From: Octopus sinensis
Lineage: Eukaryota
Reading direction: 5' to 3'
Length of the DNA stretch: 64,000 nucleotides
NCBI RefSeq assembly: GCF_006345805.1
Contig: NC_043000.1
Location: 127,038,001-127,102,000 of the forward strand
Both the position numbers and the translations under genes were made by a program. Numbering within the stretch: position 1 is the stretch's first letter; every line of letters begins with the position of its first letter. Shown one piece after another: positions 1,968 to 63,140 of this stretch. The notes below the pieces were generated by a model. The model did not search any database, was not told where the DNA came from, and worked only from the letters and a program-made list of their open reading frames with translations.

Positions 1968-2085
1968 CTGCAAAGTTAAAGAAAATAGCAACATATAAAT
2001 AATGTCATAGAAATATCTTTAAAAATATAACAGAAACATTGTAGCAAATATTGTAAGACAAGGTAGAGAGCAACAAAGAGACTGT

Positions 2086-2378
2086 TGTTTGTTCCTTCTC
2101 GAGCCACACCTGGCTAGGTCCGGTTTCCTAGTTTCCTTGGTGTATAGGTTCCCCACCTGGACGGGACACTGAGCCGTCGCAGGTGAGCTGCAAGAGGAAA
2201 GAGTGAGAGAAAGTTGTGGGGAAAGAGTCAGCAGAAGTTCGCCATTACCTTCTGCCGGAGCCATGTGGAACTTAGGTATTTCGCTCATAAACACACACAT
2301 CGCTCGCTCTGAGATTTGAACCCGCGATCCCTCGACCGCGAGTCCGCTGCTCTAACCACTAGGCCATGTGCCTCCACT
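2086..2378 (-). mobile_element. Young tRNA-derived SINE with 14-bp target-site duplication
   Basis: Head gtggaggcacatggcctagtggttagagc...gggttcaaatctc (A/B-box-like). TSD aacaaagagactgt at 2072-2085 and 2379-2392. Confidence 0.85.
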
Positions 2379-4079
2379 AACAAAGAGACTGTGACATACA
2401 AGGGGGTGCTGAAAAGTTTGCATATTCGGGAAAATAAATTTAAGCACCATTTTGCATACAGGAGCTGGAGAATTTTTATTGAAAAAAAAATTGCATTTTA
2501 TATGCCATCAAACGTGGTATGCTCAATGTTAATATTATTTATGTACACTTCAATTATTAATGATTGTATCTATTTATGTTGTGTGAAAAATTTGAAAACC
2601 AGAAGTGGAAATTTAGAATAACAAATATCAATGGAGCAAGCTTGATAAGAAAATTATAGTAATTGATAAAATTTCCCTCAGCATATCTTCATGAAATTTT
2701 ATCTCTGAAAATATTATATAAAATGTCTTTGAAGTTGGGCACAACAACAAAGGGTCTGAAACTAGTCTCTTCTTGTGTTTCAGAATCCAATATCTATTAA
2801 TCAACAAATATTAATGTCACCCAGTCTGTATGGCACATGACATGATCAGGATTTGAAGTAACAACCTAGTTGGTTTGCATCTTTTGTTTCTTATAAACTT
2901 TCAGTTCCATTATGACACTCAAACACCGTTTCTTGAATGGTTAATTATTAAGACCTAAACAGAAAAGGATAAGCAATAAAATTGATCTGTTTCTATGACA
3001 ATGTTACCTTGAAACCAAACTAAATGGTTGAACAACTTCATTATTTGAGTTACAAAGCAATAATACTTGTCAAGCTTAATTTAAATGCTGTATAATTATC
3101 ATCAATTATTGCAGACAAAAGAATGAAATGTAGCTTTAATTATAGTTAATGGCTGATACCATTTAGAGACCTAAGCTTTTATGTTATCACTGAAATAATA
3201 CCGATTGGATACAAATTTCCTATCACTAAGAATTTTCAGACCAAAATAGGTTCCAATCATATTACTTTATAGAAATCAACAATTCACTACACTAATAAAC
3301 ATAGTAAATAATACAGGCAAACAATTTTTAGCATCCATTTTAGTCAACCATATTATCATGCTGACTGTTTGAAATGAAGTTTTATTGCTGCAGCTTATTA
3401 GAAACTCGTGATAATGAAGATATTCTATTGCTATGGTTTAGCGAGATATTGGGAAAAGTTTCATATACTAAGAGGAGTAATAAAGTAAATTAAAAGTGTT
3501 CTTAACCATGGTTTTCCCCCCATCTGATTATAGCTCACTCAAATTTTGACTTTATCTCTCTTTTAAACTTGCAAGAAAATCAATTTAAGTCTTACTCTTC
3601 AAAATTCTTACAGCACACAACAGCTAAACATATCAAACAAGTCTTGAATAACAGGAAAACAGAAATAAAATGGAAAATAAAAAGAACAATTTTTCTTTGT
3701 TTTTGCTGTTAGTGTTTAGATTCAGGCCAGTCCATGATTGAATAGATTTATGATTAAAGCTATTTCAGTTGTGATGATCCTTTCTTTTTGTATATCAGGG
3801 ATTAAGAACTATCTTATTTAATATGACCTTCCTTTTTTTCCCATTGATAAGATTGTAAGATATGAGTCAAGGAAGGCAGCATGAAGGCTTCCACCACAAG
3901 GTTCAGTTCTTACTGTAGTGTGGTGGAATGTGTGCTGCACTGAATCTGAGAACTATGCTAGTGAAGTGCAAGATTCTAGCAGAATCCCTTGTGTTGGACA
4001 AGTCAAAAGATAGAGGCCAGACTAATATAATATAATAATGAAATTATTGTATACAGTGCTCAGGTGCACCACAACTTGT

Positions 4080-4560
4080 CAAAAGTTCGTATAAAAAATA
4101 TGCAGTAATGTACATATGTCTGGGAAGTGAACAGTGTATGAGTCAGATACATGCTTGCGTGTGTATGGAGGGAGAAAATCAGGTGTAGTGTTGGCGAATC
4201 TCAGGAAGCATGGAAGTTTTGAAGGATGCAGTGCTCCGACAACTAACAACTGAAGCTGGCAGTTTGTTCCATACTTCAGCAACTCTTACAGTGAAAAAAT
4301 GGATCATCTCTTCTCAGAGACAAAAATGGGTTTGCGTAGGGTCAAAACCCCTACCTAGAAAACAAGCAAAGTTACAGAAGCATCAAAGACACTTTGAAAC
4401 CAACAAGACCTGGGAGAGGAAAAGATCCTAGAGTCAAGAACAGTGGTGAAAAGTTGTTGATGGCCAATGCTCCACAGGAGGAGAAAGATTTAAGCAAGTA
4501 AGTGCTGAGCCTTCTTCATTATTTCTGTAGTCATAGGTTCAAGAACAAGGTGTGCAAGTG
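4080..4560 (-). mobile_element. CR1/L2-like LINE 3' end
   Basis: FFTVRVAEVWNKLPASVVSCRSTASFKTSMLPEIRQHYT* matches the FF..RV...WN.LP..VV.....FK C-terminal motif, followed by a 3' UTR. Confidence 0.75.
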
Positions 4561-62200: not shown

Positions 62201-62406
62201 TAGTAATCCTATCGGTCTTTTTTACTGAAACTATTCACTTAGATCACCAATGAACCAAACCCCTCATGAATATAGGAGAAATTAAGATAAACACAAGTTT
62301 ATATTATTAGTTCCTACATATGTTTCACTATTACAGCTGCTTGAACACTTTATTGCATTAAGTTACAGAGGACACCCAAAACGGGGTTCCAAACACAACT
62401 AAGTAT

Positions 62407-62671
62407 GGAGGCGCGTGGCTTAGTGGTTAGGGTGTCAGCATCATGATCGTAAGATTGTGGTTTTGACTCCTGGACTGGGTGACGCGTTGTGTTCTTGAGC
62501 AAAACACTTCATTTCACGTTGCTCCAGTCCACTCAGCTGGCAAAAATGAGTAACGCTGCGATGGACTGGCGTCCCGTTCAGCTGGGGAACACATACACCA
62601 TTGAAACTTGGAAACCGGGCCCATGAGCCTGGCTAGGCTTTAAAAGGGCGCATATATTTATTATTAATACT
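62407..62671 (+). mobile_element. tRNA-derived SINE with 9-bp TSD
   Basis: Head ggaggcgcgtggcttagtggttagggtgtc; TSD actaagtat at 62398-62406 and 62672-62680. Confidence 0.8.
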
Positions 62672-63140
62672 ACTAAGTATAGTAGTTACTTAACCACAAT
62701 ACTGCATGCAGACTGGAATATGATAATCTACATGGAGCTTTAAACATAACAACAGCGGTTGTATATCTATTGTATACACAAGGTATCAAATATATGAATG
62801 TATACTGACATATTAATATATGTGTGTGTATATATGTATGAATGTGTGTGTGTGTGTGTATATATATATATATATATAGATATATATATATACACACACA
62901 CACACAGACATCCACCTAGTCATTTAATGCCTGTACAACATCATATAGCATACCAAATCAATACAGCATCATCTTGCATGAAGAATGAATGGTAAATTCA
63001 TAACTGACCTTTTCATATTTACAGAAAACAAATCTGCCTATTTTTCCAATATTCTTCCCAATAATAAAACGAAGAATAAAAACAAAAATAAAATATAAAA
63101 AGACAAAATAAAAAAAATGTAAAAGAAAAAGTACACTTAC

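Follow-up and report, generated by a model that had tools for sequence, protein, structure and literature searches.

A conserved, TQT-rich alternative last exon in the octopus Msp300/nesprin-1 gene

In Octopus sinensis, one Msp300/nesprin-1 gene probably has two fates after a spectrin-repeat exon, here called exon A. The message may end in a large terminal exon, whose tail is a conserved mollusc module with putative LC8 recruitment, or it may run on into the rest of the rod. The DNA analyzed, a stretch of 64,000 nucleotides referred to as the window, is an internal piece of this SYNE1-like gene, which lies on the minus strand. Nesprins have mainly been studied as links between nucleus and cytoskeleton, and their isoforms without KASH are common yet little understood. 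They use several start and end sites, and isoforms with CH domains and without KASH are known (PMC3388047, PMC8616381, PMC11230431). The gene layout described here is of this known kind overall, and its novelty lies in the tail module alone. A sequence-only reading of the window had doubted whether its pair of end modules was on record. That doubt holds for the tail, while the layout as a whole is unremarkable for a nesprin.

Identity of the locus

Which gene does the window belong to? The orthologue in Octopus bimaculoides is the RefSeq protein XP_052822891.1, a 6850-aa “muscle-specific protein 300 kDa isoform X10” that belongs to the same protein cluster as the 617-aa tail. It consists of two CH domains, a spectrin/nesprin rod, exon A, and then, directly, the tail. 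Pfam recognizes two CH stretches (E=7e-46) at its N terminus, a region outside the window, and both Spectrin (E=1.6e-26) and Spectrin_SYNE1 (E=6e-19) in the approximately 1 kb of the protein before the tail. Compared with the window by tblastn, it is 97% identical over exon A (a 104-aa local alignment) and 94% identical over the tail; in exon A, 100 of the 101 residues are the same as its residues 6132-6232. The cuttlefish homologue carries the name SYNE1. These matches bear out the proposal that the flanking exons are part of a giant gene with spectrin repeats and, upstream, CH domains, and they name it as an Msp300/nesprin-1 orthologue.

Direct reading and translation of the sequence recovered all the features of the sequence-only reading, at the same positions and on the minus strand (Table 1). 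The donors at 63140 and 15575 and the acceptors at 38082 and 1968 are indeed all phase 0. Exon A has homologues in many molluscs, whose genomic open reading frames (ORFs) break at the same donor position, and it is presumably the last exon common to the tail isoform and full-length isoforms. The intron that follows it contains microsatellites and transposon remnants in addition to the alternative last exon and the candidate first exon. The CpG-rich spots that were checked are repeat copies (e.g., 2193-2377 and 54462-54647). Scans of the whole window for tRNAs and Rfam families gave no matches.

Table 1. Features of the nesprin locus within the window
Feature	Position	Strand	Details
Exon A	63141..63443	-	101 aa, ILKSEV...VEDKIT; acceptor ...aaacag, donor gtaagt at 63140
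Intron of full-length splice path, A to B	1968..63140	-	61.2 kb
Alternative last exon	36228..38081	-	617 open codons 38081..36231, then TAA 36230-36228; acceptor ccctccacag, AG at 38083-38082
AATAAA poly(A) signal	36193..36198	-	30 nt after tail stop; weak evidence, motif common in AT-rich DNA
Candidate alternative first exon	15576..15671	-	32-codon ATG ORF MGIVQSCTGKRKHPRYGYASGQPPKKRRLKRK, then gtaagt, phase 0; unverified
Exon B	1849..1967	-	119 nt, KLSHKLESS...DDKV + 2 nt; acceptor ...ctttgcag; next spectrin-like exon after the intron
Exon C	29..239	-	211 nt, (R)SAEKKCDEL...RVNDIK; donor gtaagt at 28

The tail exon

An ORF of 617 codons in DNA of 34% GC, with homologues elsewhere, is far beyond chance. 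At the sequence level, it has the attributes of an alternative last exon: its own acceptor, an in-frame TAA, a following AATAAA, and protein models in which it is joined to the exon before it. In XP_052822891.1, the junction with exon A reads ...VEDKIT/PTKRCDSTQT (the slash marks the boundary). This is exactly the junction predicted for a product made of the N-terminal part of the protein plus the TQT-rich tail. The same arrangement occurs in P0063, a gastropod fragment of 518 aa in which an exon A homologue is followed by the tail (...NKSLHMQ/RRRCRSTQTP...) and whose rod part is 73% identical to a protein of Elysia crispata. Both junctions come from protein models in databases, and these models may in part be computational.

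The tail has 12 homologues, and all of them begin at this phase-0 acceptor. Whether the contig is cephalopod, gastropod-like, or of another kind, the tail always starts at such an acceptor and lacks a start codon of its own. For example, contigs L001, L003, L004/L005, and L006 have a polypyrimidine tract and an AG, in phase 0, directly before [TK]RKxCRSTQTP, and the “N termini” of tail proteins in the databases are translated intron. In the contigs of other species, the 10 kb upstream of the tail exon yielded no exon A homologue, so the linkage of exon A to the tail in those species is seen only via P0063. A search of L001, L003, and L007 for homologues of exons A, B, and C no farther than 10 kb from the tail exon likewise found none. 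The junction shared with a gastropod, together with the phase-0 acceptor without a start codon everywhere, argues for a conserved alternative last exon rather than a gene nested in the intron. Judged from sequence, then, it is a real last exon of nesprin, and its predicted product has CH domains and no KASH. Apparently, both cephalopods and gastropods have retained the module since their lineages split.

A putative LC8-binding region

What might such a tail do? Searches of Pfam and the PDB with it gave no match. AF2 predicts approximately 80% of it to be disordered (493 of 617 residues with pLDDT below 50), with helices at tail residues 224-242, 260-278, 304-326, 418-433, and 584-616, the last of these being a C-terminal helix. 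The disordered parts contain five TQT and four [SAM]QT motifs. Only 0.23 TQT motifs would be expected, the observed count was matched in 0 of 2000 shuffles, and every TQT site sits in a segment with pLDDT below 50. TQT enrichment is found in 13 of 13 members of the tail family, and in the family alignment the Q and T columns of the anchors do not vary. An acidic block, ESESEESGYGET, is invariant in the family as well.

Motifs that bind LC8 are TQT anchored and located in disordered regions, but the anchor alone is no guarantee of binding, as many TQT peptides fail to bind (PMC6607443). In octopus, Asp occupies -4 at three of the TQT sites and Pro occupies +2 at one; several sites are without a favored P/D/E residue at +2. 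With five conserved TQT motifs in a mostly disordered sequence, the tail may bind several LC8/DYNLL dimers. This putative recruitment is read from the motif pattern, which suggests a concrete and testable partner.

A proposed continuation of the rod

The other fate would be a direct join of exon A to exon B, for which the predicted sequence is ...VEDKITKLSHKLESS. In the A+B+C product, exactly 105 residues separate the F of HDRKTF from the F of SIQEF, as had been claimed, against approximately 106 aa for a three-helix spectrin repeat. Residues 36-182 of this product align across both junctions to a paralogous repeat of XP_052822891.1 (residues 4013-4160; 147 residues, E=1e-6), and the alignment is gap free at the A/B junction. 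AF2 models A+B+C as all helical, with a helix across the A/B junction, at a pLDDT of 56, too low for a fold search; Pfam Spectrin on A+B+C alone is nonsignificant (E=0.3). For exon C, the homologue P0061, from a Logan sequencing-run contig, shares 47% identity and is interrupted at the corresponding donor.

None of the proteins or transcripts retrieved links exon B or C to exon A. Searches of 90% cluster representatives with A+B+C, and with the 999 aa before the tail, found no homologue, which says little, as long RefSeq isoforms sit in clusters with short representatives. By RefSeq convention, the label “isoform X10” implies that the gene has further isoforms, which are usually longer. The gap-free alignment to a paralogue, the splice phases, and the isoform numbering together lead us to infer the A-to-B join.

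Alternative readings of the locus

Could this be something other than one gene with two ends? One alternative is that the 617-aa ORF forms a gene by itself inside a nesprin intron and that the joined models are prediction artifacts. This is how the 2015 O. bimaculoides annotation has it, with the tail modeled as a stand-alone 621-aa protein (UniProt A0A0L8I860). However, in no species is there an in-frame start codon at the beginning of the conserved ORF, every copy beginning instead at a phase-0 acceptor; the ORF is on the same strand as its host; and the same exon A-tail junction recurs in cephalopod and gastropod. We reject the nested gene, which is highly improbable. Another possibility is that two genes lie side by side, a CH-plus-rod gene that always ends in the TQT tail and a separate spectrin-repeat gene with KASH, farther downstream, that includes exons B and C and starts inside the supposed intron, possibly at MGIVQSC. 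The failure to retrieve any molecule joining A to B would fit this, as would the phase-compatible ATG exon at 15671 and the cuttlefish SYNE1 model, Sepia pharaonis CAE1330627.1, which stops at exon A by reading into the following intron. Against it, A+B+C matches one paralogous repeat of the same protein with no gap at the junctions and with the 105-aa register kept, exon A without B and C would break off partway through a predicted helix, and the X10 label points to other isoforms of the gene. Moreover, in the fly and in vertebrates each orthologue is one gene (PMC8616381, PMC3388047). Two adjacent genes are thus quite unlikely. The expectation that automated annotation would split the locus did come true, in both A0A0L8I860 and the truncated CAE1330627.1.

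A further question is whether the intron contains a new start as well as a new end. The sequence-only reading had proposed a C-terminal half beginning with a lipid-anchor peptide (predicted N terminus, MGIVQSCTGKRK). A promoter upstream of 15671 would then produce a short, CH-less isoform, and its unique 32-aa N terminus, both N-myristoylated and palmitoylated as well as polybasic, would anchor the C-terminal half at membranes or else serve as a nuclear localization signal (NLS). The sequence here is unique rather than repeat derived, with a TAA two codons upstream of the ATG and a phase-0 gtaagt donor at the end of the ORF. The peptide has an MGxxx[S/T] N terminus that fits the PROSITE N-myristoylation pattern PS00008, G-{EDRKHPFYW}-x(2)-[STAGCN]-{P}, and continues with Cys7 and then KRK/KKRRLKRK. 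Nesprins do use internal promoters, and one human variant has an N terminus with a predicted myristoylation site (PMC3388047). On the other hand, approximately 2 to 4 such structures are expected in the intron by chance. When an ATG followed by at least 20 open codons and then GTRAGT in phase 0 was counted there, the minus strand had four loci and the plus strand, serving as the control, had two, which puts the structure at chance level. The window has 10 instances of MGxxx[ST], the region at 15.6-16.2 kb has no CpG island or GC signal, and the interpretation of the peptide was made after its sequence had been seen. No homologue was found in up to 10 kb downstream of the tail exon (less at contig ends) in other molluscs. 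A six-residue match in L004, MGIAQS, was dismissed as chance once translated. Exact look-up did not find the ORF in the protein collection, where other ORFs of the window are likewise not on record. As neither a homologue nor an annotation was found and the composition is not that of a promoter, the lipid-anchored product is doubtful, and the MGIVQSC exon is left outside the supported model. The bolder version is unlikely: a mollusc nesprin split at one intron into an LC8-binding CH rod of approximately 6850 aa and a KASH half driven by a promoter in the intron and headed by a lipid-anchor or NLS peptide. If it were true, the two halves of a LINC-complex linker would be deployed separately and targeted differently, the rod with the LC8 tail being a dynein hub or dimerizing scaffold off the nucleus.

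A model with two fates

The preferred reading, a single gene whose message takes one of two routes after exon A, can be laid out as follows. In the first route, donor 63140 would be spliced to acceptor 38082, and the message would end in the 1.85-kb terminal exon with its stop codon and AATAAA, where a poly(A) site is presumed to be used. The predicted protein of approximately 6850 aa would have two actin-binding CH domains and the spectrin rod but not KASH, its last spectrin repeat cut short and replaced by the 617-aa tail. In the second route, the same donor would skip the tail exon and join position 1967, at the start of exon B, so that the rod continues into the C-terminal half, whose expected KASH domain would be encoded downstream of the window. 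LC8 dimers on the tail would either hold two tails in a zipper-like pair or connect the actin-binding rod with clients of LC8, and such an assembly would act away from the nuclear envelope.

If LC8/DYNLL is indeed the partner of the tail, the choice of a single exon would redirect a nesprin rod from the nuclear envelope to an LC8- or dynein-associated role, a clear example of its kind. For annotation, the locus should be described as one gene with an internal terminal exon, in place of both the separate 621-aa protein and the SYNE1 model cut off at exon A.

Comparison with known systems

How does the octopus gene compare with its better-known relatives? The proposed restart exon has documented counterparts in nesprin-1-alpha2 and Msp300-G/M, where internal promoters give a unique short first exon that runs in frame into the rod. 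Those cases are experimentally documented, whereas the octopus exon is known from the appearance of its sequence alone. For the tail, the closest parallels are the LC8/DYNLL clients ASCIZ/ATMIN, Nup159, and GKAP (PMC5963919, PMC6607443), which also carry several TQT-anchored motifs in disorder beside short helices. The tail has no homology to these proteins, and its own LC8 binding is putative. The literature searched gave no case of such a region attached to a nesprin.

Among nesprins, Drosophila Msp300-PE (Zheng et al. 2024, PMC11230431) is likewise KASH-less and has a large, lineage-restricted, mostly nonspectrin region; its role has been linked to microtubules. Unlike the octopus tail isoform, Msp300-PE is without CH domains and most spectrin repeats, and its sequence is unrelated to that of the mollusc tail, which has no Pfam or PDB match. 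Nearer in design are the isoforms of nesprin-1/2 and Msp300 that have CH domains and no KASH, such as Msp300-PB and human p56CH-Nesp1 (Rajgor 2012, PMC3388047; Rey 2021, PMC8616381). As in octopus, an early alternative 3' end inside a giant gene keeps actin binding, gives up the KASH anchor, and adds a unique C-terminal peptide. In the human cases, that peptide is a few residues from a retained intron (8 codons in the example); in octopus, it is a spliced 617-aa module, conserved across molluscs and with a motif architecture of its own.

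Identity of the locus

The 61-kb intron (1968-63140) between the spectrin-like exons A and B of this gene holds a 617-codon, TQT-rich open reading frame (the tail, or stop exon) and a candidate first exon (the restart exon). The sequence-only reading described the region accurately: the sites it claimed lie where it placed them, on the minus strand, and direct reading gives phase 0 at all four splice sites it named. The F of HDRKTF and the F of SIQEF lie exactly 105 residues apart in the joined translation of exons A, B and C (A+B+C).

Features of the window (~, approximate)
Feature	Position	Strand	Remarks
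Exon A	63443..63141	-	101 residues, ILKSEV...VEDKIT; polypyrimidine tract and cag before it; gtaagt donor at 63140
Tail exon ORF	starts 38081	-	directly after ccctccacag; 617 open codons; TAA at 36230-36228
Conserved tail block	~37823-37758		tail residues 87-108
Tail helices	~37412-37104		tail residues 224-242, 260-278, 304-326
AATAAA	30 nt past tail-exon TAA	-	read from sequence
Candidate restart exon	ATG at 15671	-	32-codon ORF MGIVQSCTGKRKHPRYGYASGQPPKKRRLKRK ending at gtaagt donor
Exon B	1967..1849	-	good splice sites
Exon C	239..29	-	good splice sites
Transposase-like ORFs	53083-53520; 57151-57423	+
CpG-rich repeat	2193-2377; 54462-54647		two copies, 81% identical
Long TG/TA-type microsatellites	16981-17542; 23705-24414; 29363-29777; 15455-15496; 15878-15918

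What gene is this? A protein homology search with the 617-aa tail translation returned 12 homologues, the best being UniProt A0A0L8I860, a 621-aa "uncharacterized protein" of Octopus bimaculoides (94% identity). Its cluster also contains the 6850-aa XP_052822891.1, [quoted passage not shown], which reads ...ITKLQ ILKSEVEEKSKSL...PKAVEDKIT PTKRCDSTQTSEPSARYPG...KEEILK, that is, exon A joined straight to the tail. The predicted 63141>38081 junction is exactly that of this RefSeq model. By tblastn, its residues 6131-6234 map to the window at 97% identity and 6233-6850 at 94%, with no other match there; O. bimaculoides is closely related to the window species. CH domains had been suggested as something to look for upstream, and Pfam finds two CH stretches in the O. 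bimaculoides orthologue (E=7e-46), while the last kilobase of its rod matches Spectrin (E=1.6e-26) and Spectrin_SYNE1 (E=6e-19). On these domains and the exon A and tail match, the locus is the octopus Msp300/nesprin-1 orthologue.

The stop exon

The stop exon is an alternative last exon, and it is conserved. Could the tail ORF instead be a nested, independent gene, as the separate database entries for its homologues might suggest? The "N-termini" of those entries diverge just upstream of a conserved [TK]RKxCRSTQTP, because they come from intron sequence translated from alternative start codons. In DNA of other molluscs (contigs L001, L003, L004/L005 and L006), a polypyrimidine tract and AG stand immediately 5' of this motif, in phase 0, and no copy has a start codon of its own. 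With each of these copies beginning at a phase-0 acceptor and lacking a start codon, a nested gene is very unlikely.

The alternative last exon is also seen from the rod side. A full HMMER scan with A+B+C found many genomic fragments of exon A homologues, all breaking at the same donor position, and a 518-aa protein fragment (P0063) in which rod and exon A homologue run ...NKSLHMQ directly into RRRCRSTQTP..., followed by ESESEESGYGD and TQT motifs. Its rod shares 73% identity with a protein of Elysia crispata, and 312 aa of it align with a cuttlefish "SYNE1"; by this likeness, the exon A-to-tail junction is also modelled in a predicted gastropod protein. The warning that automated annotation might break here is borne out by cuttlefish SYNE1 model CAE1330627.1, which ends ...DRIT followed by VGGL, running into the intron past exon A. 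An E. crispata protein model (KAK3749778.1) has a different short C-terminus, SHPASSLFW..., after its exon A homologue, which is either a further alternative end or an artefact of gene prediction; a genomic fragment, apparently of the same or a closely related species, runs into the intron at that point.

Is exon A also spliced directly to exon B? Protein searches, including those with A+B+C, retrieved no protein with exon B or C joined to A. The long RefSeq isoforms sit inside clusters: the 6850-aa isoform is filed under a 621-aa fragment, and queries from its other parts return nothing. Negatives for giant multi-isoform proteins in this collection are therefore weak and need care. Residues 36-182 of A+B+C align, gap-free at both junctions, with a single paralogous repeat, residues 4013-4160 of XP_052822891.1 (E=1e-6); B+C alone gives weak matches to many rod repeats. 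The repeat register stays 105 aa across the join, and a low-confidence AlphaFold2 model is all-helical, with helix 93-127 crossing the junction. The label "isoform X10" implies further isoforms, usually longer. Taken together, the paralogous alignment, register, model and label make a direct A-to-B join very probable.

The tail

No relatives of the tail were found in Pfam or PDB. In a 13-sequence family alignment its best-conserved part is the invariant block LESESEESGYGET..TM.ASSFD; this acidic, Ser-rich stretch resembles a short linear motif of the phosphorylation-dependent kind. The tail also has three amphipathic segments that resemble one another (LLRNILFEVKSLK, LKEILKDVRVIK and LKDILNDVKLV), as well as a C-terminal helix and a VTQxDLNNIS.RLERL..YQLP block. 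TQT occurs 5 times against 0.23 expected (5 reached in 0 of 2000 shuffles), the enrichment extends to every family member, and at six anchor sites the Q/T columns do not vary. AlphaFold2, given the same alignment, puts 493 of 617 residues at pLDDT <50 and models five helices, two with pLDDT >90; all TQT sites lie in low-confidence segments. The three amphipathic segments, modelled as helices, alternate with TQT-motif pairs, which suggests a "TQT pair plus helix" internal repeat.

What might such a tail do? LC8/DYNLL recognition motifs are anchored by TQT, bind as a strand from disordered regions and favour Asp at -4 as well as P/D/E at +2; TQT by itself is insufficient for binding (PMC6607443). 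Asp is found at -4 in three of the octopus sites, and Pro at +2 in one. Given TQT enrichment, disordered setting and these preferences, multivalent LC8 binding is the most likely function we can propose, with a chance of being right close to one half. No nesprin isoform tied to LC8 motifs was found in the literature searched.

The restart exon

A product starting from the restart exon with a lipid-anchor peptide had also been proposed. The peptide matches a myristoylation pattern, and also resembles a nuclear localisation signal of the classical type. Two codons 5' of its ATG there is a TAA, and the DNA of this region is unique. Nesprins commonly use internal promoters, and a myristoylation site was predicted in one human variant (PMC3388047). 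The structure itself is at chance level: "ATG, at least 20 open codons, GTRAGT in phase 0" fits four loci on the minus strand of the intron (one a microsatellite) and two on the plus strand, and the window contains ten MGxxx[ST] matches. The region has no CpG or GC signal, the ORF is absent from the protein collection, and no homologue was found in up to 10 kb (less where a contig ends) downstream of the tail exon in the other molluscs; an MGIAQS match was judged chance. The restart exon, a candidate by appearance, is unlikely to be real.

A CpG-rich interspersed repeat, one copy directly upstream of exon B in gene orientation, gives the window's highest CpG counts and could be mistaken for a promoter island. 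TG/TA-type microsatellites produce spurious ORFs of up to 172 aa, and the candidate restart exon lies between two short ones. Two ORFs resemble decayed mariner/Tc1 transposase, one (57151-57423) containing ...PYPPYSPDIAPSDFHFFRSLQ, the mariner signature; neither matched Pfam at E<=0.01.

Comparison with known isoforms

RefSeq already includes the tail isoform. The apparently undescribed element is its tail, a long TQT-rich module that is conserved in molluscs and spliced onto the rod. Nesprin-1/2 and Msp300 are known to have several starts and ends, and some of their products are CH+ KASH- with a C-terminal peptide of their own (PMC3388047; PMC8616381); in the case of Msp300-PE, a KASH-less isoform is defined by a non-spectrin module specific to its lineage (PMC11230431). 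The architecture of the octopus locus is therefore of a known kind, like that of nesprin-1/2 and Msp300.
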